The notes: generated from the letters alone by a model not told the origin. A stretch of 37,957 bases of DNA from Lenisia limosa (GCA_001655205.1 LPNZ01008725.1:1-37957), one strand, 5' to 3'. Shown: positions 12,454 to 36,600, numbered from the stretch's first letter. A program made the numbers and translations.

Positions 12454-12649
12454 TTATATTAACCCTGTGCGTTTATATGTGATAGGTGCGGGTATGGACA
12501 GAGGTTAGTAATATGTATATATTTAAATTATATGAGTAATTTGGGTTTTCTGAAAACTAACTAATCAACAATAAAGTAGAAAACAGGTGGTGGTGTCTCT
12601 CAGTTAAGAAGTTGTGCAAAACTTAACAAAAACATGATAATAAAACAGT

Positions 12650-13660
12650 CTAAATCTTTGTGTAGTGGATTAGGTATAACGGCATGGTTTGGGCCTAAAT
12701 AGTAAGAATTGAATATAGCAGGTTACTTCTAATACCATACGTTTGGAATCTATATAAAGAGAGATTCGACCAACCTGGTGGAAAATGACTCGGTTAGTTG
12801 GGCAGTGGAAATTGGAGTCGTATCCTGGTGGGTTCCCAGAGCCTTTGAAAACCTTAACATTAAACTTTTTTTTTTGTTAACCGGGTTTAAACTTGAAATA
12901 ATTTCCATGAAATAGACATAGTTCCAATCGTCTTGAAGGGGGCTTACTTTTCCAGGAAAGACTTGAACAAGGAACATTTTCATTGTGTCTCCAGTGTAGC
13001 TCATGGAATACGCGGGAGAAGACGAGAAGTACAAACCCTTTCCAAATACCTGTCCACTGAACGTTGCTGTGCAGCTCTAAAGGTGAAAATCTGTTTTAAA
13101 ACAATTTTTATAGATGGAGGCATTTTTGGACTGGAACAACTATTCGAAAAGGCCCGTAAAATATAGAAAGTTTTCGAGGATTTACTGAGAAATTCAGACG
13201 TGAAGCCCTGGAAAAACACCGCATACTTTGATATTGTCTCGTGTAAGAAGTCCACCGGTACAGATACTGTGTTCGTTTTTGGGGTTAGAGCCATGGAAGA
13301 GAAGTCTAAAACTGTCATAATTGTCTCCAATTGACAGCAAATTTCGGTTCTTACATTTCCTTTTCGACATCACCGTTACGAATTCTCTTTATTTCATTTT
13401 TTTTGAGGAAATATGCCTTCTCAACACTTGGACATTTGATGATTTCGACCTGTAATGTGTAATTAGTGATAAAATCACAACTTTAAAATTTGTAACGTTT
13501 CAACAACAGTATGTGAATCACCTTTAAACATGTTATTTAATGTAGATTCTTAAACATGGGATTCCGATGAATACCTTTTCCACTTGGTATTGTCCAGCCT
13601 GGTTGCCAAGCATCTCCTTGAATGCCACTGTTGCCCTGTTGTAGTGGCATCTATTGTCAG
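12650..13660 (-). other. C-terminal PARP/ART catalytic domain 2 (H-Y-N)
   Basis: Exons 13575-13660, 13355-13449, 13227-13305, 12948-13076, 12775-12852 and 12650-12694 give ...VEKVEIIKCPSVEKAYFLKK...KEILLFHGSNPKNEHSICTGGL...GQVFGKGLYFSSSPAYSMSY...MFLVQVFPGK...PPGYDSNFHCPTNRVIFHQAQTMPLYLIHYTKI*. Confidence 0.92.
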
Positions 13661-16600
13661 CTACATTGAAAAATGGTTATTAGTTTAAATTTTAAGAAAC
13701 CAAGAGTATGCATATCATATGCAACAAGCCGAAGCCAATTTATTCCAACAAACAGAAGTCATTGCTAAGAACGTCTGCAAGTACTGTAATTCGCTCATTT
13801 CTCATTGAATGGTGCTGTTGTTGCTGAATAGATTAGTCCACTATTAAAATAATCGAATGTTCAAATAGAATGAAAGCTCTTGATTGAAGAATGTGTCTTT
13901 TCTAACTGTTGTTTGATATGAAAACCCAGGTTAATATACCCCTAAACTAGAGCTTACAGGAGATCTTCTTTGGGGAGAGTCCCCGGTGATTGTGATGAGA
14001 TACTCCGGGACAATCAACTCTGGATCGAAACCAACGTATTCGTCGTTTTGCAAACTCTTTTTTGGGTGATGATAATAAATGAAAGATACTGCATACCGCT
14101 ACCCTTCCTCCCTCGGCAAAGAGTGAATGATATCCGTCTTTGATGAAGTAGGATGCTTCATGATTGTTGTACGTCTTTTGGGCTTTTAAAGTATTTCCGA
14201 GATTCACCTTCACAAATTAAAGCACCAATGTGATAGTGGAAGCGAGTAAATGATAAAATAAAATATCAATCTATTTAGGAGATTATAGATTTAACCAATT
14301 TTGAAGATTGGAGAAACTCACTTTGCATTTGAGAAGAGCTCCCACACCCTTTGTGTTTATCTAAAGTAATAAGAACAGTCAACCTGGACTTTCTTGGATT
14401 TTATGACACAATTTTACCATGCTCCTATTTATTTCCAGCAGACCTTCGTGTAGATATTTTGTCCACTCTTTGAAGGGTCGGTTGCAAAGTAAACTCCATT
14501 TCCAAACATGTTTCTAGAAATACAGTCAAACAATGTTGTGTCCTTACCCTCTTCCTCCTGTTTTTGAAGAGTCCAGACTTGCGTTTTGAGGGAGACGGAA
14601 CTGTCCTTTGGCTATCGCTTGTGCGGCTACATGCGTATCAAAAATTAAATATCCATAAATTATATATCTAGATATATATGTATTACATATATACATGTAT
14701 GTGGGTCCTCAAAGCTCTGGATAGCATTCACTGGACACATCAAAACTCCCGGACAACGAAAAGTTGACCCCTTGTATGGGTCAACGGTAGTGTTAAATAC
14801 AAAACTGGTTCGACAGACCTCTTGTTTTTTCAATTTTGAGCAAGTGTCAAAAATCGAATTTGGTCTATGGAGGTGGTTATTTTACCTTTTCACGGGATAT
14901 TTTTCAAAATCTATCCCTCTTTTAGTGTTAAGAAACAAAAATGTGTACCCCTCAGAGTAATTGGTTGTAGATTCCCCCTTACTTTGTTCAAAATAGTGCT
15001 TTCTACAAGGTCAAACTTTCCCGGATAGTTGCCATTTATTCCTTGAATGTTGCCAATTATAACGGTTTTGGTTGTTTGTGGCAGTTTAAGGGCCGCAAAC
15101 GGGTAGCCAAGTGACTTAATTTGGGTTTGAGCCAAGACTATTTAAAAATCGCATTCTATCCTGTGATTATGACTGAAATTACTTTCGAAAATAACAAGAA
15201 AATTAAGTTTATAATACTTTTATTTCAAGCTGTCCAATAGTTTTGATGTGTCCGGAGATTTTGAATGATGTCCAGATTCTGAATGACGCCGGAGCTGTAA
15301 ATATATATTATATAGTATATATAATATGATATATATATTGTAGTGGTTCCAGGTGGATAAATACTTACTACACCAAAAAACATTAATAATAAATAAGTAA
15401 GTGGGTAGTGGGGAATTCGTAATGACCAACCAGCGACTGTGGTCCCATGGTAAAGGTAACTTGTTCTGGTGTGGTCCAACCCTGTTGGTATTAACAAATG
15501 TACGCTTTACACAAATGCTTGCTTTAACCACAAGTGTACATTTGTAAAATGCCAGTATTATTTAGAAAATAATTTTAATATCAAAATATGGCCTAGTATT
15601 CTAATGAACAATGCTTTGAAACTGACCCAGACGTTGACACGCTGCATAATAGCGTTGAAGTTGGGGACCATTATGGACATGATCAATTGACTGGATGCTA
15701 AAGTGCGTCAATAGGGGCTTCGCAACATTTCCAAATTTTGCGGTCTTTGATCTGACATTTGTATCGCAGAAGAGTTTTATAAAGGTTGATCTACTAATAC
15801 AAGAGATATTCCAACCCTCACTAACTTAATTTTTGCTGAATTACTTTGAAGAGTGTGATTGATGTTATTACTTTCAATTTGGTAGGTCGCCACTGACACC
15901 TCCTAAAACCAATAAACCATGGAACCACTCTTCTTCTTCGGCAAAGAAAAAAGATTGTGAAATAAATATTATTTGCTCCATTACAATAAATAAAAAAGAA
16001 AGGAAATAAAAAAATAAAAAAGAAAGGAAATCTATAAATATCGTAGCGTTGTGATTAATTATCTGACCTTCACCCATACCCTTACATATTACCAGCTTAC
16101 TTCAATTGAGATTTTGTTATCAACTACCACTGATTTGTTCAGCTTTAGTTGGGACTTGCTGATCTCCAAATTGGTCTGAATAATCAAACAGAACAAATGA
16201 CAAACTTGCAATTGCTTGAGAAGCATCCAGTCGCATTTGGATTTTGCACTTTTTTGTCTCAGTGATTCATACTCCTAGAAGTGTTACATATTAATAAAAG
16301 CATACCTGCCTGCGGTCCTCAACTTCCTCCTTGCTGATTCGAACATTGCTATCAAAGAAGAGCTGAAAACTGTCAGTTGACTCGTATTCTCTTGTAAAAA
16401 CCATGCCAATAAGACAACAAAACACGATTTAGCTCCAAAAGTGTAGTTTTTTTATGGGATATGGAACAACAAATATTGAAAAAACGTGTCACCATCCCAC
16501 AGTATCACAAGGGAAGATAAACCAAACTGATCTCAAAATTCTTCTCATTGGTGTTTATTAGATATATTCAGAGAAAATTATTAACAAACACCTTCCCTCT

Positions 16601-19600
16601 ATTTTTGGAAGTTAATATGTTGTGAAATACCAATAACAGACATTTTGGGACCAATAAGGAATGTAATGAGAATCCAAAAATCAGATATTTTGAACAGTAA
16701 TTGATATGATGTAGATATTACACAAACTAAATATCAGAGTAAATGCTGAGAGTCACTGAATAAATCATTTGCCTCTGCGTACATCGTCATTTTTGGAAGA
16801 CTTCTGTGCGTTTCCACAGAGTCCAAGGTGCTGCTTGTTGCAAATGAAGCAGTAAGGTTGATCACACGATGAACAATGGCATGTACATGAGGTTTCCTAA
16901 GTCAGTAAACAATACGCTCTGGTAGAATAACATATCATGCTTTCAGAACCTATCATAACATTGAAGGAACCTAAAGCCCAGAAATGTCATTCCCCAAACA
17001 TATTTTTGATGGAAGCAAAATACCAGACAAAAACTATATACTATGTACTATCAGTCATTATTTTGTTACAACGAAACAACTGAATATTCCAGTTTAAGGT
17101 GGCCCCAGAACAGGCACAATAGAAATATTTCTTGTATCCTCGAACGGGAAATTTTAATCTTCACTTCAGCAAAATGCTTCGAGCGTATTGCTTGCAATTA
17201 TTGTGTTAATAAAGCGGGCAAAAAATGACAAACTTTATATTATTACTTTAAAGCTGAATATCCATATTAGGGGGAATATAGGTTCTGAGGTTGACATCCT
17301 ACCGAAGCTCCAAGGGCCAGCCCGCTGCACCCGGAGGTTGGACATTTCGCACATGGTCGGAGTCCACTCTACATAAATGGTGGTGAATCCATCATTTTCA
17401 GCATTCACAGAATTTGTGTTACCAATCACAATCCTACTCCATCAAGAACGTAATATTATTATACTAAGATCAAGAAAACCTTTCAGTTCTCAATGTTCAG
17501 TTTTTGACGTATCAACATCCCACTGTTGATTGCTGCTGAAGTACTTGATATCCGATTTGCTGAGTGTAGAGAGAAGATTTGGTCCTGTTATTTAATAAAC
17601 GATTTGTTAAAATATCCTACAAAGATATCATTATAAAACTGTGGTTAGTTGGATTGAAATTAAACGAAGTATTATAATATGAAAATTGCAATACTCTAAC
17701 GTCCCCATTTAAAAACTAATTATAGCAATCCATGCCTACTCTGCAATTTTTCTGGCGAAATTTGGATTGACCTCGAGTATATCATTCATGTGTACACCAA
17801 TATGGCATTTGGGGCAATGGAACGTGACGTCTGAGTGGTTCGTGGGGAATTGAATAAAATGGAATAGAATATCTTACTCTCAGTCTTAACATTCAATTGA
17901 CTAGAATGTAGTAGTCAAAATATAATAAAAAGTATAATTCCTTTAGCAAATATGGAACACCTGAAGTGCAAACTGCCTACAATGGGAAAGGGATTGTTCA
18001 GTATAGTGAGTAATACAGTCGCTGCACATCAAGTGATCGCAGAGGGTTAGAGGATTATTGGTCGGGCAACTGCAACCAACGCCTAAGAGCAAGTTATTGT
18101 CTTTCATAGTTAATTGATTGAATACAGAGGAAAATGCAAATATTTGATTATCAACAGGATTGACGACAATGTATCATTATTTCAAAGGAGATCACACTCT
18201 GGCGCCTCGACTTGGGATTCCCTTGTGATATTTCTTCCGATTTCCATAAAAGTCAATGCAGCGTAGTGCAGAAGTAATTTGTGAAATAATCCAGTGACCA
18301 ACAAATTCCATCAGTTAAGTTGTGCTGTGAACGGGCAAGTTTTTGGATGTCACCTCGAGCCTCCTCGTACTTGCTCAAGTTTCCAGAGACAAACAGCTGC
18401 GGGCAATTAACATATGTCATATAAAATGCAATTATTGTGCTGCAACATCAAGAAATATAGTATCAAGTGACTCGGTGTTTCGTATACCTTGCCTCCCTTG
18501 CAGTCATCAACTCTCAAATGCTTTTTGATTGCAACAATTCTTGCATCCTGTTCGATTCCGGGAACTAAAGGGACAATAAAAAATCAAATAAAACTTAACT
18601 TCACTACATTAATCATGAACGTCCAAATGGAATTGCTTTCCGCATATCTTACAGAATTATACTTGCATACCAATGGGAATGGGCTGCGATTTGACCTTCA
18701 CAACTTTATTCCACTTTGCAAAGAAAGCCACTTCAGCCTTTGGGATAAGATGCCGTTTTTCGTTTAAATGTTTAAATCGAACACAAAGATGAAAATGATA
18801 TTACTTATTGTTCTTAGGTGATAAATATTTCCTCTTCTGATCATTGCCGAATTCAATTAATCACATTTTTTTTTTCTTTTTTTTAAAAAATTTACCAACA
18901 AAACATTAAAAACTAGTTGTCTTTATGATAGAACATTTACACTTTGTATACACTCAAAAAAGATTCTTATCAAATCACCCTTTCACCTTGTTGATGCTAT
19001 CCACGTGGCCACTCAGGAAGGCTGCATTTGCCAGGTTCAAATGAACTTTGTGACCTTTCATCAAAGCTGAAAAACTAAAAAAAGTTAAAATTACTGTACT
19101 CGATTAACAATACTTATAAATATCACTTCCATTGATATTTCAAGAATAAAGTCCATCGAAGTTGTTATAACATCAAAATGGTTTTAAATCAGAACAATAA
19201 GTGATATGGTCTAGCTAAATACATCACAGTTTATAAACTTACTTAGAAATTTCGTCTCTCAGTTGCGCAAGTTGCCACTTGGGTAAGTCGAGACGCTTTT
19301 GTTTCTAAAATCGTTTGCAAATAATGTCGTTACGCAAATATCACTCAGAGATAGAATGATTTAACAATAATAAGACTATACAATGTAACATATCAGGTAG
19401 CAATACTGTAGATGCAGTTTTGTGATAATATTATCCAAGTTCACAACAGCTTACATATTCTCTGCAAATGATAGAGAAAGTTCGTTGAAGATCGCTGTAG
19501 TTTGAAGACTGAAACGTAAACTATTAGACTATTCTACTGTTACTCCACTGAACAGTAAAACATAAACAGAGTCCTCTACGTCTACACGAAAACCAACTTA

Positions 19601-22600
19601 CACTGAGATTGATTTGGTTCGGGTTTTTCTTATCAAAATCCATTCGCACACCTGGTTCATGAGATTTTAAAATGAAACTTTTGATAAAATAAGGAAATAA
19701 TGAGTATTGTAATTGTTGACGTATTCAGTACCAATACAGTTTTAATATCCACAAAAGATTACAACTTTACCTTTGTCTCCTGCTCTTTCACTCAGAGATT
19801 GGAACTGTTGAGGAGAATTAGCTGCAATGTTATTGTCGGTATAAAACATAAGATTGTCAAATATAATTGATTTTTGTTCATTTACAAAATAAATCAAGAT
19901 TCAAATACAACAAGCAATTACCGAGTGTGTAGCTTTCAACACGCATGAGGTACATTGTCGTGATTTGGAGGGGAGCCGGCCCTCTGAGCTCGTCATTGAT
20001 GGGCTTAAACAGTAAATAAACTTCATTTGAAGTTGGATTCGATACCAACAACAGTTGACACTGTATGATATATTACATATAATATATAGTATCTCATATG
20101 CTATGATATATAGTATATATAATTAGTATATCCTCGAGTCCCTAAAAGGGGTCCATTTTTACACTTTTTTATTCTTATTATTGTTTCTTTAAGTAAACAG
20201 AACTATTTCCTTGCCCAATATTCTGACTGGCTTTAAGATAAACTCAAAACAATTCTGTCAGAATTGAAACAATGCCATTGGACTATTCTTTTACATTTAC
20301 AAAAACAAAAACAACACAAATTTTTACATTTTTACAGCCTTTTTAGGTGTTCCACGAGTCTTGGGGACGATGTGATTAAGGTGGAGAATCACAACCTTCT
20401 CACAGTCTTCAAGGTAGTAAACCCCAATATTGGACTCGAGACTTGAGCAGTTGTAGAGAAGACGCTGTTGCAAATGCACAGCACATAAGAAGTCACAATG
20501 AGATTCAATTGCGGTGAATTCAGTGGGGTCAGTTAAGGCAAGACAGTGACTAAATACAACACCACACACCTGGGTTCGCAAATAGGGTTATTTTTTACGT
20601 AATAAATTTCTAAAGCACAAAAAAATATGGCCCTTTGACCCCGCAAGGGGGGGGGGGGGGGGGGGGGGNNNNNNNNNNNNNNNNNNNNNNNNNNNNNNNN
20701 NNNNNNNNNNNNNNNNNNNNNNNNNNNNNNNNNNNNNNNNNNNNNNNNNNNNNNNNNNNNNNNNNNNNNNNNNNNNNNNNNNNNTTTCTTCAAACTCTTA
20801 TTATTGGATAGCTGGGGTGATTTTTGAAGAAAAAAAATGATAAAACCAAAAAGGGGACCCCCGGGGAAAAATTTTCAAAAATAATATTTTCCTCAATAAC
20901 TGTTCTGGACTTAGAACCTTTTAATTCTCACATTCTGGCAAAAATTGATGCTACTAAAGTTGTATAAAAACAACCGATGTAAAAATGGACCCCTTTTAGG
21001 GACTCGAGGATATTTATAATATTTATCTATCATATATTATATATTACTATATATATAGTCTACATACATATATATTATATAATATAATATATAGGTGAAG
21101 GTACATAATTGTGTCCAGTCACATTATTGTCCACTTTAAAATGTTCCGAATTTTTGACTGGGCGCAAGTATTTGGTTTCTTTTTGACCAAAATCTACCCC
21201 TTAACACACCCTTTTAAAAAAAGATTTCGAGTATTTTAACCGTAAACTGTCCTTTTCAAAATTAGTTTATTTATGTGCAAGTTTGACGACTGCTTTCACA
21301 AGATTCCTGAAAAAGTATGCTGGTTAAATCAAAAATTAATATCTTTATTCCTTGAATGATATAAAATTTACGCTGTATCACGGTATAGCGAAATCAGGAT
21401 CTACTCTTCAGTTCTTTTCACAATTGAACCAGTATTCAGAAAAATCACTTTTTTTAGAAGCAACACAAATATGAGTGGCTTCGCATTGAGGTCAGAAAAC
21501 AGAGGAAAAGGTTTGATAACCTTGCAAATCATGAAAAAATTGCATCTTTGAAGATTATTTGTGATGGCGTGGGAAGAGAAGTACCTTCATTGAGAGTCGT
21601 TCAGACAATATTGAATGTTGGAGGGGCTTATCGTTGACCCTGCCAAGACTGCTTCGCCCTTGCCAAATTCGGAGTGTGCATTTGCTCATGCCCTCCAACC
21701 TCCTCCACGAACGGCCCTNNNNNNNNNNNNNNNACCGGCTTTGATACAGCTCATTAGGTCTGCTAAAGACAAATTGTCGACTGACGAGGAAGCAAAGAAA
21801 GCGTGGGAAAGTATTGCACATGAGAGAGATGCTCTCACTGAAGCTAAGGTCAAGTTCTACCAGCAAAATTCTGTGCCCAAACTTCGCTTTTGAGCCATCT
21901 CCCAAAGCTCGCAAATCAATCGCTCTGAAGACCGAAAAACACTGGGCTGACGTCTTGTTGCAAGAGAAAAAGAAGGAAATTGCAGATCGAAAAAGTGGGG
22001 AGAACTGTTCCTTAGAATCACTATTCTTTCTTCTTCTCTAACAACATTTAGAAGCCCAAAAGCTCACAACGTTAGGAGTCAAGAAAGAGAGTGTGTTGAG
22101 GCAAGAGTAAATATGTAACATTAATTACTTTCCTTAAATATCACAATTTAGGAGTCAAAAAATGACATCGTGGAAGCAGGCCTCAGCCCAAAATTATTTA
22201 TTACATCAATATATGAATATTTATCTACAATTATCCATACGAAGGGTTTTTAATGCAAAAAAATTCAAAGAATGAAAAAGTAGACATAATAATGTGACTG
22301 GACACAATTATGTATGTATATAATGGATGTGTAGATGATTAACAGAAAAAGGTAATATTTATCACATTCATTTACACGTTAAACTAAAGTAGAACAATTT
22401 GCCTTCAGATATAAAAAGTTATCAAACATTTTTAAAGAAGAATTCGATTTAAGTCTTCCTACCATGTTTTCAAGAAGGTCAGTGAGAGTTTTAGCTCCTT
22501 GTGGACTCTCCATATGTACCTTATTTTGTAAGATATAAACCAGGTGTTCAAGTAAAAATCCATATATCTGTTGACGATGTTGATTAATATCATTTATATT

Positions 22601-25600
22601 ATTTCATATAGTATATATGAAGAGTGAACTGAATGAAGAGTATTAGAAACACAACACAGTCTTATTGATCCCCAAAAATTTCACTAAACGGCACCAACCA
22701 CAATAGACCGCTTGTGAATCTCTGGACTAGAGAACACTGAAATCTTCAACGGCTAAAAGAATAAATAATCAGCTAATATGGGTAGTGGTACGAATACGCA
22801 TTGTCACTTACTCTAGTTACTGGTTTAAAGCATAAAATGCCATCCATACCTGAGCCTTCTCGGGCAATATTCCGGAGATCAGACGTGTCCATATGGAGAC
22901 ATTTCTGTGATCATTAAAAAATTGGTGTGTTATAAACTTGTGTATTATACTTCTTAAAACTTCAAACCAATCCTGTTGGGTTAATTGTATTAACAAAGCT
23001 GCATACTCAGAAGGCGATTTGGCTAGGAATGATGAACTGTCTATGTTGGGCTTGGACTTGACAAAGATTTTGATAGCGCCAATAGGTTTCAATGTAGAGC
23101 TTAAATCATATCTAAAATTTAAATAATTATCAGTACGTGATCATTAAGACCAATATGCTTACCTTGTCACTTGCGGAGGAACGTCCAAAAGGACCACGTT
23201 ATAGGTAGTGCAACCAGATGGATTCACTTTTGTGTAGGCTTTAGGCTTTACTTGAATTGGAACGCCTTTGCAGCTGAATGCACTGGCCATGCCTAAGTAG
23301 TAAGCTATTTAACTCGATTTGTTACGAAATCTTACATTTGCTGATAAAGTCATTTGCGGACGACTCTACTGAGAACGAGACAGTTGCGGTGTATGGTTCA
23401 TCTGAACAGGAGTTGTCCTTGATCTAAGTCGGTAAATTTCTGCATTAATGCTTCTTTAAAAGCAGAGGAAATAGTGTTGAATTATTTCAAAAAATAGAAT
23501 TCAGGTGAACTTACAGTGACTTTGGCAATACATGACATTTTGCTCGATCCATTGTTGACAGTTTTCACCTACATACATGTAAATAAGTTGACTATTTGAA
23601 ACAAAAAAAATTCCTCTTTTCCAAATACTATAATGACAAGAAAATGTTGCCAAGTACTTGTTTATATACATTTCAAAAATAAAAAAGGTGAACCTAAGAA
23701 AGAATAAATCAAACTTAGATCATTAAAAATTTCTAATATTAGAATTCAATAACTGTAATATTACTTCCAATAGAAGTTCCAACTTTTAGAGTCGATTTGT
23801 CGATTGTCTTGGAATAAAACTCCGTTTTGGCAATGGTTGCGCTACCCAATTTTGCAAACTGAATAGTAGCAGTTTTGGACTGAGTGCACCGCCCTAATGG
23901 TGGTCATACACATGTTATGCTTAATAAACAGATAATAATGTTTAAACTGATAATTTAAGATGCAAAATATGTTTATTGATACGGTAGTTAATAATATCAA
24001 TGATGCCACTACGGCGCATGGATATGGGAATCCTGACTTATTCTGGAATCGCATAAAACTATGAGAATCTCAAGTAATTATATTATATATATACATGTAT
24101 ATATTTAATAGAAATACAAAGTATATCATAACAGTAGCTTTTCCTAATACCTGAAGAGAAGTAGAACTGAGTGACATCGGCTGCGACTGCTGGCTATTTG
24201 AGTAAGTAATAGGCAAATTTAACATGGACTTATCCATTAAAAAATATGTAATTTCTATCACAGAGAACATCAATTTACCATTATAGTAACACTTTAGAAA
24301 AGGCATTGAGTATTTTGGTTTTGGTTTTGAGGATTTTAACGCGAGATGAGAGTAAAGATATTAACTACAAATTACAAAATCAACTTACAATCATTCCCAT
24401 CAGGGTGTCCTTAGTGGTGGCCGATGGAACATTCATAAGCGTCACACTCATCTAATTTAGAAATTATGAAAATGGAACTTATTCAATGCTGATTCATATC
24501 AGTACAATAAAGTCTATTCAATCACTTTCCCTCATTCATCATTATTGCATAATTTACAATCCCACTGATTCATTTGGACGTAGCAAAGTGATTGGCTTCA
24601 TTCCAGGCTCAAAAACAGCTGACACTCCCCCGGATCCTTCAACTAAAAAGTTGTAATTATGAGAAAGTATTTTACATGCCATATGTTTGTCTCAACCTAG
24701 AAATGCCCCAAACCAATTAACTCATGCTTAACTATCTGTTGTTCTTTCCTAAATTGTAAATTATCACCATTTTTCAACAAATTACTATATATTCAACATG
24801 GTATTTTAATAATTTTTAATCCTACCGAATTGTTCGAATTAACCTGTCCAATTCTGAACTGAACTCCTTCTCTCCTAGAGTATCAACAGTAACCATTATG
24901 ATATAAATTTGAATAATGATATCAAACAAAATTAACTAACAAGGGTATGGCAGCAATTATCGATAAATAATAAATAAAACAAATCCACTGAAGCCTACTG
25001 CAACGTTCAACGCGCATCTCAATACTGTAGTTTGTAACATAAATGGTGTATCGCGTCTGAAAATTGTCAAATGAACAAAAAGAAGTATTTATGATTTTAA
25101 TTGCGTCATTACAATCAGGATTGCATATGAAATGGAGAATATACATGTAGCTGTTTCTCAAATGAGATAATAATTAAGCTGAGCCATAAACAGAACAGTA
25201 AGTTGTACTACAAATAATGTAAACAATGGAGGAATACATCACACCATAACCAACATTATACTTAGTAAAGATGTGATTGTTCTTGAGTTCTTTCAGAATA
25301 ACACTTGAGAGATTTTGGCGTTTGACCTGGAATCATTAATGTGAATAGTATCAGATGACCTCATTCGTATATCATTGAGGCTATTCCCCACAAGGACAGG
25401 TTGTTTTCTGAGCGCTTCATCAATTTGGGAATGCAAGGATTTAGGGAGCCACCTCTTCTCGACCTTGAATGTGAAAATTGTAAATGTTTAAAAACAAATC
25501 ACATGTTTAAATGGAAATTTCAACAAATTTTCAAGTTGAGGTTTGAATATGAAAAACCCAAAAATTGGTTTCATTTACAATTTCCAACAGGAAAACAAGC

Positions 25601-28600
25601 AGTTGCTCTTGGACCAGCACCCGTGTCAATGACTGAGAATGCAATGTGAAGATTATCGGCGCTACTGGCAGCATGGTACTAAATTGTTAAATGGATATAA
25701 TATAGGTAACACAAAACTTATCTTAATCCTGAAAAAACATACATTAATAAGTCCTTCAGAAGACCCGCTGATAAGCCAGAGTTTTGTCTGTTCAAAGAGG
25801 ACACAAGTGGTGTTGAACATGGTTCTTGCAAGAGTACTAAATATCACATTAAACACATGTTCCCAAATCAATTGGTGGTGGTCAAAAAAGGAAGATATAA
25901 TAAAAATAAAAGTTTTTTGTTTCTGATATAACTTAGAAAAAGAAAAGAGGCTTTAAATCCATCAAGGTGCAGATTGGAATTCAGGTTTTACAACATAATT
26001 AGGAGATAAATACAATATTATTGCAAACCTGTGGAATTCACTAGGGTCAAGCTGTGCAGCACTGATGAAGTCTTCTTTTTCACTGGATTGCAGAAGGCCG
26101 CTGGCAATGAACGTTTCGGCCATAGCATTCATTCCCCTAGACTCATAATTAAACCAAGGTAATTGGGAATAAGCAATTATGAATGGAACATAATTCACAA
26201 GCCTTAGATATTTGTGCATACTGTTTGACATCTTTGGCAATATCCTTCATCACTTTCATGTCAAGGTTCATTTGTTTGCACCAATTCATCACGTTGGTAT
26301 TTCCCTATGTGATCAGTGGAAAATTATGAAAACGGTTTAACTTGACTAGTTTTGTCTTTTGAACGTTTTCCATTTGTAATTCCAGTACGAAGATAAATAC
26401 CTTTTGTTTCTCTAGTTGGAACATCACCATCAATTCTCCGGCATCAAACATCCATGAATTTGTTTCTAAACCAGGTAAAATTCACTTCCTTCTTCCTTTA
26501 TATATAACTACAAACACCCAATAATTGTAATTACGGAGAATAGTATAATGTCATATAATATATATTAACCACACTATGTCTTTACGCATGTACATGTATA
26601 CCTCAGTATGTTTCTACGCATCCTACATATCAGATATACCACATACTCCCCACTTTTCATGACATTGATTTTACCTTGGGATGCAGCGATTAGTGAGGCT
26701 GCATAAACTAAAACATCAGAAGCAAACTTTACAACTTATCACAAGAAATGAAACGTTTAGTACATTTCTGAATAATATATATTGTCCATAGATTTTGGTA
26801 TATACTATATACATATGTAGTTGATTCATATAACATATTATTTCACAAAAGAACGTTCTTATATTTCCAAAAACATAATACAAATTGGGACACATAATTT
26901 CCTACTTCCGTAGGAGCACATTGGAGTTGTGTTCATCCCCATGAGGCAGGCAGCAGTCACACGGAAGTCGCTAAACAAAGCATAGTTTTTTCTGGATAAT
27001 TCCGACAAGGCAAGCCCTGTAGATTAATAAAATGAATTCCAAATAGATATGCATAACAATATATGTGTCCAACCAAACCGGTTTTGGTAAGAGTTGAACT
27101 CTCAATTGCGTCAACCTGCTGCAAGAAAACAATTGCATCATTCCATTCCTGAGTTGACACAGGGTCGATCCACTTCGGCATACTTGCGAGGGCTTCGGGA
27201 ATACCCCATGCTGCACCATTAAAATGAAATAAAATTTTGGATTGTTGGTTAGTCACATATAATACATACACATTGAAATTATATTACTGAAACACAACAT
27301 ACTTGCAATTTCAGATGCAACAGAAGTTGCAGGACTCCTCATGACTTCAGGAATGGTAAATGAAGACCGTTCTGGAGTGATTATTGAATTTTGAAACAAA
27401 GCAAAATGTCTAATATATCCACATTTATTTCGGGAGAACTTGTTTAAAAGTACAGTAACCTACCACTGAGTGATTGTTGAGAGAACATGTGGATACACGT
27501 TCCGGGTTTGGTCCGTCCAACTCGCCCCTTCCGTTGGACAGATGATGCCTTTTCGGTAAGATTTAAATTGTGACAACATTAAAGGAAGCTGTAGTTCAAT
27601 ACAATTAGACATAATGTGCAGAATCGAGAACAATAAAGGACACTTTGAAAATATTAACAATAGGATTGCAGCAAAGTCACATTGATATTAGAGTTGGATA
27701 TATAATATATGATATATTATACATATCTAATATTACNNNNNNNNNNNNNNNNNNNNNNNNNNNNNNNNNNNNNNNNNNNNNNNNNNNNNNNNNNNNNNNN
27801 NNNNNNNNNNNNNACCACGGTTTGGCTCATAAGTTGGTTTCACATTATACCCGCCATCAATAACATGTGTGAGACCTGGTTGAAGTTAATTATCAGTTCC
27901 ACATTTTAGATTAAGATAATGGTACTTCATTAACACAGCTTACTATTGATAGTGATGCTGTTTTCAACTGCATCAGTAGCAAATATGACTCGTTTGAACT
28001 GCAAAATTAATTACAATATAATAAATCCAAGATCAAGAAGAGAAATATGAATTCCCCCCTCACAGGTTCTTGTAGATCTTGAAGTTGCTTTGTCTACAGA
28101 ATTAGAAGCCGCGTTGAATAATTGAAATTGCATATCGATATGTATTTGAAAGGATATCATACTGTGTATATTCAATTGTTATTAAAAATGATTCAAAATC
28201 ATTTCATTTTATTTCAGGTCTTGCAATTATCAATTGCATACACAAATTACCTTTCTCATCCTACTTTGCCAATAATAATTTCACAGGTGAGTTGAGGACT
28301 GAGTTTTTTGAGGAGGGCTTCTGCGGCTTCGAGATTTTTCTTAGTTGCAAGGAACGCAAGAATGTCTGTAGTTTCTTTGGCATACGAAGAACTTTGATGT
28401 TAAATCAAATAAAGGGAGTAATAAAATACTCTGAGTTTAACTGGATCTGTGCAAGGCCCAAGAGATGATGTTGAGAGTCCACTGTACATGTGCTTATTTC
28501 CTCGAGATATTGGGGGTTTAAACATATTCAGGGGTTAAGGATATGACAACCACCTTGTTACGTTTCTCAGTATGATTGTGTAACATACAGAGCCATATTA

Positions 28601-31600
28601 TTTGGGGAGGCATGCAGAAAGCTGTGTGCACTGAGTTGGCAAATGATTGAGTAAATTAATAATTCAATATCTCATATAAGCGTGATGGGGTGGACAGTGT
28701 TGGCCGGATACAACTTTTTTCTCATTTCTTTATATGATTGAATATGTAATACATCATATTCAAAATCTTCGATTCACCAAACCAGTTCTTTTTTTTGTTT
28801 CCATTTGACAAGTATTACGACTTCAGAGGTCCCTTCATGGCAAGGTATCCACCTCAGCCAATTCGCCCACAAAAGCGACACCATCCGCATTCGGGAACTC
28901 AGAGCACGGGTGATTCACTTTCTATCACATCAAACATACCTGATAGTTTGGATACACTCCATGACAGTTGCCTCAATGTAGTTGAAGGGAGTTAGCTCTT
29001 GATTGCGGAATATCACATCAATCTGAAGGAATGTGAATGAGATAAAAAAGAAGAATAAGGAACAACATCCAAAAATTTGGGTGTTTATCAAAATTCTATG
29101 AAATTGATAATAAGAAATTATACAAATTGTCGATAACAATTACATACCGGCTTAGGCAGCGTTTTGATACTGTACGAGTCAACTGGCGCAATACTGGAAA
29201 AGTACTCCAAGATTGATGCATCAAGAGTTGCACTCGTGATAATGAGTTTCAATTTACTACCACTGTTTTTTCTCGCATTTAATGCCCTACATTTGAATAA
29301 ATAGAAAGACAATTTCAGAAATAAACATCATTTTGGCGATTATGCACTGATATAACAATTATTTTCCTCAAATATTTCTTTTCTTAGCAGAATTCAGTAT
29401 AATCATATTAAGCGACACCTCAAACTGTTTTATTCTGTATAGAATGAAATCTTGCTTCATGTTTCTGAAGTGAACCTCGTCCATCATAATAATCTATGGC
29501 GGAAAGTAAGACTAATAGCTGTTTTGTCTGAGTACAAATACAAAGGTTGAATGCTTGCATTACATATCTCTCATTATAACCAACTTATCCCATCCCCTCA
29601 AATGATACAATGTACTGACATACATGTATATCGCAATAAGAAATAACAAATAAGGCTTTATCTGGCCGAAGCCGTCCACAATATCACGCTTATAAGATAT
29701 TGGATTACGGTATAATATTAATTCACCCAATCATTTGCCTTCTGCACAGATATGATGATATATGGAGAAAATATCGAAAATTTAGACTTTATACATGTAG
29801 CTATATGATATGTATTGGTTGTTTGACATACTGAATAGTCGGAGAAGAGGGGGTCAATTTCACTCAGTTGTAGCATTGTGTGTTCGCGAATCATGTCGAA
29901 AGATGAAGTGGTTGCTTTGGCCGGATCTCCACGATACCTGGTGGGAAATTGTAAAAGTAAAAAACGATTTAGATGACTTTAGGGTTAGATATAACTTGTG
30001 AAATAGGTTTGAGGTTTAAAGGGTATCAAGAAAATATAATAGACAGTAATGAGAAATAAAAATAAAGATGTACATGTATCTAATACAGTTACTATATATT
30101 GTAAGAAAATAAAATAGATAGGTTAAAAATTTGCTCCTTCTCACTGTAAATCACCCGATTCGCCAACATAACAAGCACGCATAAAATCGACAATTCCTTG
30201 CCCAATGTCCTAAATTTTGAGTTAAGATTTACATGCATGGTTTCATTAAAATAATTATGTGATAATATCAAAAAAAAAATATCATATTATGTAATATACA
30301 GATTGAATATCCTACGTTTGTTCATTTGAGACAATTTCACCAATCAAAAAGGAACCCAATCCTCAGCTTACCCCCTGTGGTGTGACACATGCAACTTTGG
30401 AGTTGACAAAACGAGGGTCGGAGAGTAGTATCGGAACAAGCTGTGTTGTTTTGCCACTTCCGGTGGGTGACTCAATCATCTGTGGACAAGAATTTTAAAG
30501 ACATACATATATGATATGTATTTCAAAACGTACAAACGACGGTTCTTAGAATGCATTATTGTACAACTACAGTCGCAAATATCAATGTTAAAAGTAATTG
30601 TCAAAACTATCAAGAGAGGGCCCTCACCATTACGTTGTTAGAGTAAACCGCTTCTCGAATGTTCGGAGCATGAAATGCAACAGGCATACCCAGCTCCGCA
30701 CGTGACAACTAGATGGTTAAATTATTTCAAGTGTTCATGTTTTAAGAACTCAAAACCAAAAAAATATGGGACTTAATTACTTACCTCAGAGAGCATCATT
30801 GATAACTGTTTTGGAAAAGGGATGTTGGTATCATTGAAGATTCGTTCATTCAGTCTAACTAGACTAATTGCATACTTGAGGAGAACTATAAAATGAATGT
30901 GTAAGAGGGTAGACAATAATATGGTACAGTGCAATGATAGTTTGATTAAATAGATCATTTTATTCCGACTTTGCGAGTTCTGGTGATAATAGTCCGCCTG
31001 TTCCTTGGTAATTCCTGGTCGGTCAATCTGCTGATTGGCATTCTGTCGTTTTCTGTGGAATAATATTTGTGGTAATGTGATCCAGTCAATTGGTATACCG
31101 ACCTTTAGCTTGATACACTGATACAAATTCAAAAACAAGTCGCAATTAATTGGGTAGAGAAATAACCCGCAAACAAAAGCATTTTTTCAAAAGCCTCAGT
31201 CCGATAATCTATGAGTTGTTGCAGAATTATTCCGCATGGAAGGGACCCATCTTTAGCATGTTTGTGAAGGATCTACAAAGTTATAAATCTAAGAAGCAAG
31301 AACAAAGTTGTGGAGGGCTGAAGATAATTTTAGAACCACAACATTTGCTTACTTGGAATTTGGACTCAACTACTTGTTGTTCCTTTACAATGTAGGCTAT
31401 TCCGTCATTCGTCAGCTGATATGTTAAAAATTCCGTCATTTGTCAGCTGTTTTGTTAAAACTTAATGTAAAAACAATTGAACTGGAAAGTCAGCAGAAGA
31501 ACTGTTCCTTGGAACTATATAATGAAATCCATGCTTAAATATTGTCATTAATTTATTTCCATCCTACTTTTGTGTTCGGTATTATGAACTCAGGATCTCT

Positions 31601-32865
31601 GGCGGCCTCTTTAATCTTGTTAACCACTGAGTCTTCGTTGCCAATTAGGGACTTGATGCTGTTGAAGGTGGCTAGGGCTTCGAACTGCACAACTAGGTAG
31701 ATAATGATCACATCCATACAAATTTCGCAATAACTATAAGATAAAGTGTCAATCAATTGCGATTTTAGAAGTTTTGCGAACAGAGCGGATAAAAGGACAG
31801 TTTCACCCTTATCCTTGCAAACCTCCATTATTTTCTGCGGCATTTTTCTTCATGAATCTGTCCTGGGAGTAGTTTTTGAGGCTAAAGAAGTGTTTGAGCT
31901 TTTGTTGTACCGCCTCAATCTCCGTCCTAAAAGATAGGTCATATCAGGAGAAGCCAGGCGCAACAACGAAAAAAGATCCAAAGTACTGAAGAAATACTAT
32001 CTATTTAAATATACATGTATCTATCGAGATAGCTAACTATGATATATATAAATGCCATAGCTGTCAGATAGCTGTTATATCACCTTGCCCATGCCTACAA
32101 TTTCACCGTTGTCTGTTGTTGAGGTGGTGGGGGTGTAGTGGTGGGGGAGACCCACGCCCGTCCGGCTCCCCGTCCTCCTCCTCTTCCTCCTCTTCCGCCT
32201 CTTTCACCAGAGCCAAAATGTGCCTTGATTGAAGGTTTATTCCCAGCATCTAAAACATGGTTATGTTCTGAAAAGTTCTGGTGATGGGTGAAGCTTCCTC
32301 TTCCTCTCCCTCCTCTCCCCCCTCTTTCATTGGGTTTAGCTTCTAAATCATGGCTGCTGTCTGAATAGTTCTGGTGATGGGTGAAACTTCCTCTTCCTCT
32401 CCCTTCTCTTCCGCCTCTTTCAACGGATCCAAAATGGGACTTGATTGAAGGTGTATTGCCAGCTTTTAAAACTTGGGTGCTGTCTGAACTGTTCTGATCA
32501 GGGGCAAAATTTCCTCTTCCTCTTCCTCCTCTCCCGCCTCTCCCCCCTCTTTCATTGGAGCCAGCTTCGAAATCATGGCTATTGTCTGAAATGTTCTGGT
32601 AAGGGGTAAAATTGCCTCTTCCCCTCCCCATTCCTCGTCCTCTTCCTCTTCCTCTGTCAGGTTTAACAAAGCTCTCTCCAGAGTAGTCTGTAAAAGAATC
32701 GGTTGAATCACTTCCTTCTTGATTGAGTGGGATTTTTCCTCTCCCTCTCCCTCTTCCTCTTCCTCTTCCCCTCCCTTTTCCTCCGCGACCATTGACGCTG
32801 TCACCAATTGATTGAAATGTGCTACCAAATGTTTCGAATGTGTTGGTAAAGTCTTCGACAGTCAT
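12650..32865 (-). CDS. Giant spliced gene: RGG repeats - DExH helicase - HA2/OB - RRM-like - KH-like - RING1 - IBR - PARP(H-Y-E) - PARP(H-Y-N)
   Basis: ATG at 32865, stop TAG at 12650-12652. Phase-consistent joins were checked at exon 1 to 2 (32099/31926), through helicase motifs I-IV, across the 2.4 kb TE-filled intron (ENM|CQLLL, acceptor 20060), and continuously from RING1 to the stop. Some junctions in 30780-31920, 22500-27000 and 18400-19800 were not fully resolved, and one gap (27737-27813) lies inside. Confidence 0.75.
13958..15751 (-). other. PARP/ART catalytic domain 1 (H-Y-E)
   Basis: Exons 15627-15751, 15431-15481, 14548-14626, 14444-14513, 14322-14360, 14097-14207 and 13958-14056 give FSIQSIDHVHNGPQLQRYY...YLYHGTTVAAAQAIAKGQFRLP...GNMFGNGVYFATDPSKS...LLKCKVNLG...DGYHSLFAEGG...SLQNDEYVGFDPELIVPEYLITI. 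His codon at 15447-15449, Glu codon at 14039-14041. Confidence 0.92.
14692..15299. mobile_element. Degenerate Tc1/mariner-like MITE (about 610 bp) inside an 804-nt intron of PARP domain 1
   Basis: Perfect 15-bp inverted match GGACACATCAAAACT (14733-14747) and AGTTTTGATGTGTCC (15239-15253) within longer degenerate inverted arms. The ends read TA-CA...TG-TA. Confidence 0.6.
16783..17368 (-). other. IBR (in-between-RING) zinc domain
   Basis: Exons 17303-17368 and 16783-16896 join in phase 0: CAKCPTSGCSGLALGASETSCTCHCSSCDQPYCFICNKQHLGLCG. This fits C-x4-C-xn-C-x2-C-x4-C-x2-C-x3-H-x3-C. Confidence 0.8.
17740..18302 (-). other. RING1 (C3HC4) zinc finger
   Basis: Exons 17981-18082 and 17740-17830: (C)VGCSCPTNNPLTLCDHLMCSDCITHYTEQSLSHYVTFHCPKC. 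The first Cys is formed across a phase-1 junction; more than one upstream donor supplies the T. Confidence 0.82.
18303..20060 (-). other. Possible KH-like repeats between the RRM region and RING1
   Basis: Segments such as KVHLNLANAAFLSGHVDSINK and QLFVSGNLSKYEEARGDIQKL resemble the strand-G-helix ends of degenerate KH folds. No GxxG motif was confirmed; the call rests partly on analogy to plant DEAH11/12 and PARP14. Confidence 0.3.
20128..21013. mobile_element. Non-autonomous TIR DNA transposon (about 885 bp incl. a gap), intronic
   Basis: Perfect 36-bp inverted repeat ATATCCTCGAGTCCCTAAAAGGGGTCCATTTTTACA at 20128-20163 and 20978-21013. The outer TA or ATAT may be the target duplication. No transposase seen. 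Confidence 0.85.
21102..22314 (+). mobile_element. Tc1/mariner-pogo-like TIR element (about 1.2 kb) with a decayed transposase-like remnant, intronic
   Basis: Perfect 27-bp inverted repeat TACATAATTGTGTCCAGTCACATTATT at 21102-21128 and 22288-22314, including flanking TA. The interior reads AWEEKYLH*ESFRQY*MLEGLIVDP and a K/E-rich tail, weakly like the pogo DDE_1 C-terminus (low confidence). Confidence 0.75.
22850..24460 (-). other. Two or three RRM-like repeats
   Basis: SVTLMNVPSATTKDTLMGMI (about 24392-24455), YTATVSFSVESSANDFISKC...KGVPIQVKPK and YNVVLLDVPPQVT (about 23163-23200) follow the RNP2/RNP1 hydrophobic pattern. Confidence 0.55.
28598..28720 (+). repeat. Dispersed repeat family R1, copy 2 (intronic)
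   Basis: Aligns to 2491-2613. Lies in helicase intron 28389-28939. Confidence 0.85.
29655..29750 (-). repeat. Dispersed repeat family R1, copy 3 (intronic, inverted)
   Basis: The reverse complement GGCAAATGATTGGGTGAATTAATA...TCCAATATC...AAGCGTGATATTGTGGACGGCTTCGGCCAGATA matches copies 1 and 2. Confidence 0.85.
31399..31460. repeat. Tandem direct repeat, 2 x 31 bp
   Basis: ATTCCGTCATTCGTCAGCTGATATGTTAAAA followed by ATTCCGTCATTTGTCAGCTGTTTTGTTAAAA (28/31 identical). Confidence 0.85.
32099..32865 (-). other. First exon of the helicase gene: RGG/RG-box repeat domain (255 aa)
   Basis: ORF 32095-32865. The donor TT|GTAGGC at 32098 joins in phase 2 to 31926 (L-TEIEAVQQKLKHFF). An upstream coding exon cannot be excluded. 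Confidence 0.8.
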
Positions 32866-33639
32866 GGTTGCGCTCAGTTCTCTACAAGCAATAATGGAAA
32901 AAGAGTGTATTCATATGAGAAAGCCACCCAATACTTGTATAACGTTTGTCGTCTTTTTTGTTTTTTTTTAAATGCCATTTTATTGGGAATATGGACACAT
33001 TTTGACCACAACATATACATAATAGGGTATGGGGTATCGGAACCATTAGGGAAAAAGGAAAACGCTGCAACAAACCAGGAATCTAACGAATGCTAATTCG
33101 ACACCTGTTGTCCTTCCCAGGCCAAAGATATCAAGCAACCTGTGGGCAACCTACAGCAAGGATGACTTAGTTAATAGTCAAAATCATTTCAGCAGAACCA
33201 CTCCCTTGGTTTTGGGAATTCAAATAACAAATAAAGAAATTATTTATTCTGTTATTCTACCTGCAATCTCAGTGTATTTCACTGTCAAATAGCTGAATAT
33301 TCGACAGGGGCGGAAGCGGAAAGGAAAAAACGGAACTTGATCAAAGATCACAAGTACTTCGTAACATCCGAGCCAAGAAGCACACGTGGCTTTTTGATTG
33401 TTTACCGAATTCCTCTCCCCTTCTCCCTTTTCTACCAATTTAGAGAAGAAAGAACCTGTAAATGCTAAATATAAGGCCAATAAAGCTCGTCTAATCTCCC
33501 ATTTCAAAGGCTCGTGTCATCGGTGAATCTTGGTGCTTACCTTCCTTTGGAAGGAATCTTGGCCTCGCGCCAAGAAACAAGTGAGAAACCATCAGCAAAC
33601 AAGGAGCTTCCTGAAGGTTTTTCCAGGTCCCCTGGCATA

Positions 33640-36600
33640 ATGATAGTGTGGAAGGTTGGTTGTCACATATTGATGGTTTGTAGATAGAATAACTACTTAC
33701 CCATATTATCATTACGTGTTTCTTTGACATCTGTAGCCTCTTCTTTTCTTGCTGTCTTTGAAGCTGTGTTTGGCGTCGGCCATAGACTTGAACGTGATTA
33801 TCACCCCGGTTGAAAGAAAACTCGGTGATACGGAGTTTCTTCCGTCCAATGCTGCCGATGATATTGTAAGGGGGATGGATCATCTCAAAATGTATATGGG
33901 TGGATTGCTGGTTTTTTGCCAGTCTAACTCTGGCAATGATGTGGATTTGACAAAAGAAGCTACCTTCGGAATCGGCATTCAATGGTGCTAAGAGGCGGAT
34001 AGCATTATAATATGATTGATTGGTTATGACCAATTGTCCTTCATACATACATATACATATGTACATATCATATTATATATATTTGTTATAGAGAAGAGTG
34101 GAAAGTCTTTCGAAATAGAGTTTTAAATTTAATCAGACAACCAAACATGTGTTCTTGATTAACATGAATTTTAACTCTTCTTCAGAGTGCCGTGCTCTAT
34201 GACGGCCAAGTCCTTGCGGTAGACTCAGACAAAGCGGTCATTTTCTCTCCCGAAGGTTGGTGCTGGGATTGTCAAAATGAAATAGCTTGAATCTCAACGC
34301 TGTGGACAGATTTTTCTGCTTGACAATATTGGAATCTATAATTTGTTCTTCAAAATGTGTGGAATCTTAATATATCAGACAACTTCTCGATCATACGGCG
34401 GATGGACAACATTTCTTCAAAGCCCTTCATTCAGCATGAGAGATGCATCTTCGTATGCGGGATAACATGTTACATGATCCAATAATGATGTACCAAAAAA
34501 TATCTCTTCCCTGCAGGTTATTTTATTTTCTGCCCCTTTTCCTGGCGGAATTATATCGTTGCTTCTTCGCTCAAATTGTCTTAGGAGATCCAAGGTACGA
34601 AAATGGCATATGACAACGGAGCCTTCACTTTGTTCCCTGTCAACAACACGGCAGTATGGGGGTCGTGAAAGGGGATCATACATCCTTTAAACACATAGTT
34701 CATCTCTACGTGACGAGTGATATGCCCTTCTTTTAAACGTATATCTTTCTAAATGTGTCTATCAATTCCTCTAGCGTCTCTTGTTAAATTAACAGCCGGA
34801 TATATCATAAAAGTCTCCCTTGAGACACACTTCAAAACGACCTTACCCACCCCTCAGCCTGTCATTATTCCTGTACCTGCGGGAACACACTCCTCCAACC
34901 CCTACTGCTTGTACAACGATCAGTCCAGTCTCTTTGTTGCTGTTTCGCTTGAACAACAGAGTTTTCTTCCAGTGGGATGATGGGGAGTGATAATGTTTGT
35001 CCAATCAATTGATTCAAGATTACCCCCCCCCCATTATTCGGTTCGTGATTAGTACTGTTACGCCAATATCGAAGTTTCCTTCGCTTTACTCCCCCTTACT
35101 CACTACCCTCATTTCAACCTATCTTACTCCCCAGTTCAACCTATCTGATCCACTCAACCCTGTTGGCCTTGCCGAATGGGATTTTACCCCGGAACTGACC
35201 GACGCCAATTTCGGCGGCGTAAGGGGGGGGGGGGCTGGTAGAGATACAGTGATAAGTCTTGACCGATTTGATCTATGATTTCCCAGGAAAATCGGTCAGG
35301 ACTTATTTCGGTCACTGTATATGGAATTGTCAATGCAGGTTGATTCTGAATGAAGAGCTGAGTTAAATCCAACCTAAATGTCACGATAGGCGAGGGTGAG
35401 AGCAAGGAGAGAGGGAAAGAGAAAAGGGAATAGAGGGAGTGATTGGAGTAACGGTTCGATATTGTTTGATACTTTCCCCTCAACGAGTTGATCCATTTCA
35501 CTTCCCAGAACACTGTGGATGTGACATTGGTGTCGAATATTGATGACGATGGCACTTTCATCCTGGCTGGAGGTAAGTGGCGACTTGTTTTGTGCGTTGC
35601 TTTTGGGTTTCACTACGGTTCACAAAAAACCCGCGATAAAATATGGATAATTTTGAGGACATATCGAGAAATTTAGACCATTATTTTTCATAATGACTAG
35701 TTTTCTCTGCTTTGGAAAATTCTATCATCTGCAGCTCTAATTTCCATTTTAGAGTACTCCTACAACAAAGACGGATTTATTTTCTACTCCTTCTCTGCGG
35801 GAGTAGTTGCTCATGTTCATTCCCTTGATGCTCAGCATGTGAGAACTCCTTAACTAAATAAAAATTTCTGAAAACTCCCACTTAACTTCGCTACCGTTTT
35901 TCCATCACAAATCTGCATTCAGCGCCATGACTTACACTTTAGTTTACCATTCCAAACAAGCTGACATTCCTTCATGACGGCACTCTGCTTGTTGGGGAAT
36001 ATAATTCCATTTCCTACGCCAATGCAACCGACCTTTCGGTCATTAGATCCTACACAGATAGTGAAATGATTGTGGGCTGAAATGTGTTCGATCCAAAGGC
36101 TATGTGACTCGTCATAATTTTTCACTGAATATATTGGTGGCAACTTTATGCTTCTAGACCTTGTCAAAATTCCTTTGTTATTACCCCCCCCCCCCTCAGA
36201 CGGACGTTATTGTTGTTGACCGATCAATTGGCCTTTATGCCGGACCTCTGGGGAGCTTCAATCAACCGGCGTATGTGGGTTGCTGAAACCTTGTTGAGTG
36301 TTAAGCACGGGTAAAATATCGATAATTTTCAAAGATTTATCGAGAGTTACAGTCTTTTTTCGAACCGAGGTGAAGCCCTAGTGGTTATGAACAGTATCCA
36401 CAAGGGGTGATAGCAATGGAGTGGATTTGATTACGCGATTGATTAGGTTCTGATATTCTAGGTTTGCGCTGTACAATGGAACTGATTTTGTCGTCACTTC
36501 CTCCACAAACGCTGATAGGTGCAACCCTACTTTACTGCATGTTTGTGGCAGTTTGTTTGTGCTAAAATGAAATTCTAATATTCATCTTTAGAGTCCCAAT

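Follow-up and report, generated by a model that had tools for sequence, protein, structure and literature searches.

We analyzed a stretch of DNA of 37,957 nucleotides (nt) from Lenisia limosa (GCA_001655205.1 LPNZ01008725.1:1-37957). This whole stretch is hereafter called the window, and all positions are counted on it. Stop-free segment reading showed that the minus strand carries the gene under study, which starts with an ATG at 32865 and ends with a TAA at 12650-12652. From the N terminus, RGG repeats are followed by a La-type motif, a DEAH helicase, an RRM-like part, RING1, an IBR-like module that lacks RING2, and two PARP units. On balance, we are inclined to regard this region as one expressed minus-strand gene of approximately 75 small exons and 2,300 residues that runs through the PARP units. 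Its parts, in the direction of transcription, are as follows.

12650-32865, minus strand, entire predicted coding region (75 exons and 2,322 amino acids [aa] in the curated model)
32099-32865, minus strand, exon 1, rich in RGG/RGR (19 RG[GR] motifs)
31568-31926, minus strand, La-type RNA-binding motif (exon 31823-31926 by Pfam, exon 31568-31677 by pattern only)
27464-30479, minus strand, DEAH helicase core (motifs read directly)
25392-27371, minus strand, HA2 (winged-helix, ratchet) and OB-fold-like region (pattern reading only)
25056-24999, 24871-24826, 24748-24714, and 24636-24566, minus strand, predicted linker exons from the helicase to the RRM-like part (strong splice sites, consistent phases)
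22463-24451, minus strand, RRM-like exons (about three beta-alpha-beta units by eye; RNA-supported from 24193 down)
20004-22462, minus strand, intron of 2,459 nt (707-nt RNA contig, GT..AG ends; contains two N gaps and a high-copy repeat)
18488-20003, minus strand, exons that follow the RRM-like part and precede RING1 (no recognized fold; RNA junctions and two predicted exons, 19074-18987 and 18737-18671)
17740-18396, minus strand, RING1 (exons 18303-18396, 17981-18082, and 17740-17830; RNA joins the first two)
16783-17368, minus strand, IBR-like zinc module (exons 17303-17368 and 16783-16896; Cys/His pattern only)
16101-16362, minus strand, post-IBR exons where RING2 is expected (boundaries uncertain)
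15218-15816, minus strand, candidate PARP N-terminal half with LYHGT (exons 15627-15816, 15431-15481, and 15218-15294; pattern and spacing only)
14732-15114, minus strand, degenerate duplicate-like block of 77 aa (231 nt) on a pair of exons, with FVFNTT in place of LYHGT
13958-14542, minus strand, C-terminal half of the first PARP unit (Tyr motif GNGVYFA, Glu motif NDEYVGF; phase-consistent exon chain)
12650-13823, minus strand, complete second PARP unit (splices cleanly and ends at the canonical C terminus of the fold, followed by TAA)

The middle part of the gene is supported by RNA. One run of polyA RNA (word shares of 0.08 and 0.13) and a second, DNA-like run (0.99 and 0.83) were both mapped on 18000-23999, and read-level RNA evidence is confined to 18000-24180. 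Thirteen junctions were found in RNA contigs. All are CT..AC on the plus strand, which corresponds to GT..AG on the minus strand, and they define the following introns.

18083-18302, 18397-18487, 19305-19454, 19509-19601, and 19652-19770, minus strand, RNA-confirmed introns
19822-19921, 20004-22462, 22520-22698, 22753-22849, and 22905-23006, minus strand, RNA-confirmed introns
23112-23162, 23293-23335, and 23569-23783, minus strand, RNA-confirmed introns

A 14th intron (23894-24150) was deduced from a loose contig end at 23895 that maps to 24153-24180. The 707-nt RNA contig spans 23291 to approximately 19258 and joins 22463 to 20003 over the largest intron, and another contig of 337 nt runs from 18552 to past 18000. 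The sequence of the spliced contigs is open in one frame. An earlier note on this DNA, which was made from the sequence, stated that hidden exons splice in phase, and the 13 junctions and the single open frame bear this out for the middle part. The note also placed a large intron at 20061-22457 and named it as a point at which the region may break into separate genes. The intron is real; however, its true ends are 20004 and 22462, such that the proposed ends were off by 57 and 5 nt. Moreover, the RNA contig joins the RRM-like part to the pre-RING region there, which speaks against a gene break at this position. The confirmed introns 23293-23335 and 23112-23162 are only 43 and 51 nt long, respectively, and the structure of the gene is unusually fragmented.

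The coding region as a whole was modeled by splice-aware dynamic programming, which was trained on confirmed exons and introns, tied to the frames of the motifs, and corrected manually. All introns of the resulting model are GT-AG, the shortest being 43 nt, and its 2,322 codons are closed by a single terminal stop. The exons are small (median 82 nt), apart from exon 1 (767 nt). The GC content of the predicted exons was 0.43-0.44, against 0.28-0.32 in the introns; this is the same contrast as that of confirmed exons, although the check is partly circular. GT and AG sites are dense, and some chain of exons may nearly always be built. Therefore, the 75-exon chain is not proof of a single gene. 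Spurious micro-exons of early models were dropped, and exons at 28603-28695 and 29645-29741 were rejected because both are interspersed repeats. Repeats of this type, approximately 50-105 nt long and 77-87% alike, are located at 2498-2909, 28603-28695, 29645-29741, and 36307-36380. The same short interspersed repeats are common to the introns of the gene, the flanks of the window, and several places on a second contig of the same assembly (ENA NODE_1151).

Three runs of N are present inside the gene (20669-20784, 21719-21733, and 27737-27813). The first two are without effect on the reading frame because both lie inside the RNA-confirmed intron 20004-22462. The third run (77 N) falls in the helicase. 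An independent contig (ENA ERZ3820729 NODE_730) is 100% identical to the window at 37247-27814 and 27736-21791, and has 86 nt at contig positions 9435-9520 in place of this gap. Within these 86 nt, a helicase exon finishes with its final 33 nt and a GT donor opens an intron; motif VI is located on the next exon. Since the fill keeps the exon end and donor in phase, the helicase frame is continuous over the gap. The large intron also contains a high-copy repeat at 21150-22200, at which the depth of DNA contigs was 200-630 against a baseline of approximately 34. The RNA contigs over this repeat carry 3-6 mismatches and derive from other copies, and Pfam recognized none of the open frames on either strand of the repeat. 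The N runs at 239-339, 1099-1187, 11585-11681, and 20669-20784 have flanks of G or C homopolymers that translate as poly-Gly or poly-Pro, and look like an assembly artefact.

Exon 1 starts with an ATG that has an A at position -3, and an in-frame stop is located upstream at 32911-32913. Exon 31823-31926 matched the first half of the Pfam La profile (PF05383, profile positions 3-29) with an E value of 0.0016; its score of 18.7 bits lay under the cut-off of 37.1. At 31689-31715, a GC.H..C pattern was regarded as a chance occurrence because its frame is not that of the model. A 130-nt copy of a part of exon 1 (window 32631-32758) is present at 10417-10546 of ENA NODE_1151 with 92% identity. This copy sits in an unrelated-looking open reading frame (ORF) and is the only portion of the gene duplicated on that contig.

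The helicase core was read motif by motif as follows.

30372-30479, minus strand, motif I, GSGKTTQ
29426-29493, minus strand, motif II, DEVH
29148-29286, minus strand, motif III, SAT
28265-28391, minus strand, motif IV-like exon
27944-27998, minus strand, motif V, TDAVENSITI
from 27875 into the gap 27737-27813, minus strand, VIDGG exon
27464-27548, minus strand, motif VI, QRKGRVGR

The DEAH/RHA order of motifs I, II, III, V, and VI is thus found on the minus strand, and the ATPase motifs are intact. The view of motif V as degenerate was rejected because the correct phase reads TDAVENSITI. At the exon level, the matches were weak though concordant. Pfam DEAD was matched with an E value of 0.025. 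The top PDB matches of the motif I exon were Prp43, DHX16, Prp16, DHX8, and HrpB, and that of the motif III exon was a Prp22-type factor. The gene shares its motif set with Prp43/DHX15, DHX16, and Prp22/DHX8, which are the best PDB matches of these two exons. However, identity to them is low, the C-terminal domains are recognized here by pattern only, and the extensions at both termini differ entirely. A search of representative proteins with the segment 26960-27283 returned only a prokaryote-style ORF of the window itself and two spurious matches.

The helicase is followed by the linker exons and the RRM-like part. The predicted exon 24451-24389 leads into the RNA-confirmed exon 24193-24151, and opens with an ATG directly after a T-rich acceptor. 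We considered whether the region is divided here into two genes, namely, an RGG-La-DEAH gene that ends after the OB-like region and a PARP10/14-like gene with RRMs, RING1-IBR, and PARPs that starts from ATG 24451. The exact coincidence of the exon start with ATG fits this division, as do the start of the RNA evidence at 24180 and the N-terminal RRMs borne by clade-3 PARPs (PMC2964712). However, this ATG immediately follows a strong acceptor, as it would in an internal exon, and the four linker exons, which are well formed and phase-consistent, fill 25056-24566. Since small exons are dense throughout 25500-24400, there is no room for a 3' untranslated region, an intergenic region, and a promoter. 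Furthermore, a helicase and RBR in one protein is a documented ancient architecture (PMC2904391). We consider a division at this point to be quite unlikely.

RING1 consists of C-x2-C, C-x-H-x2-C-x2-C, and C-P-x-C over its three exons. It is of the C3HC4 type, with a match to Pfam zf-C3HC4 (E value of 0.0025); in PDB, the CBL RING was matched weakly. No match to the RING1 segment was obtained in a metagenome scan. In the model, helicase motif VI and RING1 lie approximately 800 residues apart, a feature shared with the Helicase-RBR subfamily. The spacing of the IBR-like module fits C6HC, with CP-x3-C followed by C-x2-C-x4-C-x2-C-x3-H-x3-C. In the expected place of RING2, exon 16101-16274 may carry a relic, albeit a doubtful one, comprising one C and then C-H-x2-C. 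A donor at 16323 was preferred over a 31-nt intron at 16275-16305, which was rejected. An RBR protein without RING2 is without the catalytic cysteine, and the ubiquitin thioester is not formed. The RING1-IBR part can at most dock an E2 enzyme.

Both PARP units were recognized by PF00644, which matched four exon pieces at collinear profile positions. In the first unit, 14432-14611 matched profile positions 81-98 (E value of 1.3e-3) and 13934-14098 matched 170-197 (0.15). In the second unit, 13197-13388 matched 49-80 (9e-4) and 12753-13076 matched 75-127 (1.1e-5). In a local alignment of the block 14732-15114 with the LYHGT half, RTSFVFNTT stands opposite RTSYLYHGT (z 2.8). The 231 nt of the block are a multiple of three; therefore, the frame is kept whether the block is included or skipped, and the block may be a cassette or one member of a mutually exclusive pair. 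Depending on splicing, the triad of the first unit is ambiguous, being H-Y-E with LYHGT (approximately 15450) or N-Y-E with FVFNTT (approximately 14790). An exon at 14548-14626 was dropped because the intron to the Tyr-motif exon would be 34 nt. An AT-rich simple stretch at 15296-15341, tyrosine/isoleucine-like in translation, is located inside a predicted intron. The second unit does not have the H-Y-E triad. Manual alignment to the first unit gave H-Y-N (LLFHGS, GKGLYF, and TNRVIF), and, as judged from these residues, a unit without Glu is of the type seen in mono-ADP-ribosyltransferases.

The degenerate half-domain raises the question of whether the locus is decaying, as a transcribed pseudogene or an exon-shuffled remnant in which RING2 was lost and the first PARP unit was partly duplicated and degenerated. 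The duplication, the absence of RING2, the repeats within introns, and the divergence of many domains beyond exon-level Pfam detection are in line with decay. However, a long open frame is kept in the spliced RNA contigs, and the 2,322-codon model is free of internal stops. The ATPase motifs and the His and Tyr motifs of the second PARP unit are intact, and the stop coincides exactly with the end of the PARP fold. A non-functional locus is, in our opinion, very unlikely.

The junction between the IBR-like module and the PARP units requires more attention. Without use of the donor of the IBR exon, a stop follows five codons on at 16768; AATAAA is present near 16560, and the next exon, which begins at 16362, shares its frame with an ATG at 16404. 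The region may thus hold two genes, one of the Helicase-RBR type, from RGG to IBR, that ends after IBR, and a tandem-PARP gene that starts near 16404. Consistent with two genes, exon 16101-16274 has a GC content of 0.36, which is low for an exon, no RNA junction was recorded in 12600-18000 (a stretch outside the read mapping of 18000-23999), and a precedent for RBR joined to PARP was not found in PMC2964712, PMC4245714, or PMC2904391. However, the intergenic space would be merely 120-350 nt or so. A good donor ends the IBR exon, a good T-rich acceptor opens the next exon, and their phases match. The first gene would contain RING1-IBR without RING2, which is itself no known functional form. Word shares also suggest that the RBR-PARP exons are covered by the RNA run approximately as well as those of the middle part. 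We view the presence of two genes as a tentative possibility and prefer the reading as one gene.

Several further observations weigh against one gene with the full set of domains. Outside the RNA-covered stretches, the chain is a dynamic-programming model, and at this density of GT and AG a chain appears buildable almost anywhere. The links from the helicase to 24451, from 19243 to 18564, and from 17740 to 12650 are thus predicted by the model, with RNA junctions being confined to the middle part. Within the mapped stretch, no RNA junction was found between 19258 and 18552, and RNA depth was absent at 18600-19199. Pfam scans of single exons are insensitive, and the majority of the exons gave no match. 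The HA2/OB-like region and the IBR-like module gave no Pfam or PDB match in exon-level searches. Pfam did not find an RRM in the five exon pieces, for which the likeness to RRM was noted by eye, and the LYHGT half at 15218-15816 was unsupported by Pfam, PDB, and Atlas. The RING2 pattern (CPxC...GC-x-H...C) was not found in any minus-strand frame downstream of IBR. RBR-type ubiquitin ligase activity is doubtful because RING2 and the catalytic cysteine are absent, and, judging from the sequence, we consider this activity unlikely.

In animal antiviral systems, RNA sensing, ubiquitylation, and ADP-ribosylation are spread across several proteins. The earlier note proposed that a single polypeptide carries all three activities. 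This proposal is weakened. RNA joins the RRM-like part to the pre-RING region and the pre-RING region to RING1; however, RING2 is absent, the triads of the PARP units are ambiguous in the first and H-Y-N in the second, and the other links are modeled. The domain content and order given in that note hold, except that the La-type motif was missing from its list. Its two PARP domains are confirmed by two sets of motifs and by the four collinear profile matches. In the case of DExH-HA2/OB, the helicase stands on directly read DEAH motifs and PDB matches, whereas HA2/OB was recognized by pattern. Similarly, RING1 is supported by Pfam and by RNA-joined exons, whereas IBR was read from its Cys/His pattern. 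The earlier observation is largely right, and its interpretation is plausible, but overstated.

The closest known family is the Helicase-RBR group, which includes Arabidopsis DEAH11/DEAH12. The Helicase (Plant I) RBR subfamily combines a DEAD/DEAH helicase with RBR, is ancient, and occurs in unikonts and bikonts with repeated losses in animals (PMC2904391). The earlier note referred to plant DEAH11/DEAH12; the fusion of a helicase with RBR is not restricted to plants. As modeled, the present gene shares with this family a helicase placed N-terminal to RING1-IBR and a very long protein. It differs in the absence of RING2 with its catalytic cysteine, the presence of two PARP units instead, and an N terminus with RGG and a La-type motif. 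PARP is not mentioned in the paper on the Helicase-RBR subfamily (PMC2904391), and neither a helicase nor IBR is mentioned as a partner of PARP in the surveys of PARP architectures (PMC2964712, PMC4245714). Searches for homologous proteins with exon segments revealed no relatives, and one of them returned only the 130-nt partial copy of exon 1.

Regarding the PARP units, PARP10, PARP14, and PARP15 (clade 3, PMC2964712) resemble the present gene, with RRM-type modules (RRM-like by eye here) upstream of a PARP without the catalytic Glu and with a His motif of the LYHGT type (in a candidate N-terminal half here). However, macro and WWE domains were not found here, the catalytic units are in tandem, the first unit has Glu, and a helicase and RING1-IBR lie upstream. 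The RNA-linked antiviral PARPs, PARP12 and ZAP/PARP13, were the best PDB matches of the Tyr-motif exon of the second unit. These matches were weak and below significance (E values of 0.19-1), and, unlike in PARP12 and ZAP/PARP13, no CCCH fingers or WWE domain were seen in this gene. The coupling of a RING-type ubiquitin module with PARP would be shared with DTX3L-PARP9. However, DTX3L-PARP9 consists of two proteins, with a Deltex RING-DTC and a macro-PARP, whereas a single chain with an RBR-type RING lacking RING2 and a helicase is predicted here. Fusions are not mentioned in the DTX3L-PARP9 preprint. Other architectures that combine a ubiquitin module with PARP have been recorded, namely, a U-box-macro-PARP of Dictyostelium (DDB0232928) and a fungal clade of E2-like PARPs (PMC2964712). 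Their ubiquitin modules are U-box and UBC-like, and they have no helicase, in contrast to the present gene.

Our analysis establishes the domains and their order, the splicing of the middle third of the gene, and the nature of the gaps. That the gene forms one transcript, that its enzymatic domains are catalytically competent, and that it serves RNA surveillance or antiviral defense are inferences. In the mechanism that we envision, the RGG, La, and RRM-like modules and the helicase would select and remodel RNA or ribonucleoproteins. Mono-ADP-ribosylation by the C-terminal PARP units may follow, with the protein itself, the proteins bound to it, or RNA ends as targets. The gene may derive from the ancient Helicase-RBR subfamily as a lineage-specific form whose catalytic RING2 end was swapped for ADP-ribosyltransferase modules. 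We also speculate on a more specific mechanism, which we regard as unlikely. The helicase, guided by the RGG, La, and RRM-like modules, would set an E2-docking RING1-IBR beside the PARPs, and RNA would trigger the ADP-ribosylation of ubiquitin, RNA-bound targets, or RNA ends. The protein would then be a one-chain counterpart of DTX3L-PARP9 that was made by replacing RING2 of a Helicase-RBR ligase.

Should the region hold two genes, it is an ordinary neighborhood in which a tandem-PARP gene stands next to a truncated Helicase-RBR gene. As a single gene, it is probably a new form of the Helicase-RBR kind that bears PARP effectors. One protein would unite RNA recognition, helicase activity, and ADP-ribosylation in a single chain, in which RING2 was exchanged for ADP-ribosyltransferase modules. 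It would then represent a natural case for the control of PARP by RNA and for the recruitment of E2-ubiquitin by RING1-IBR without RING2.

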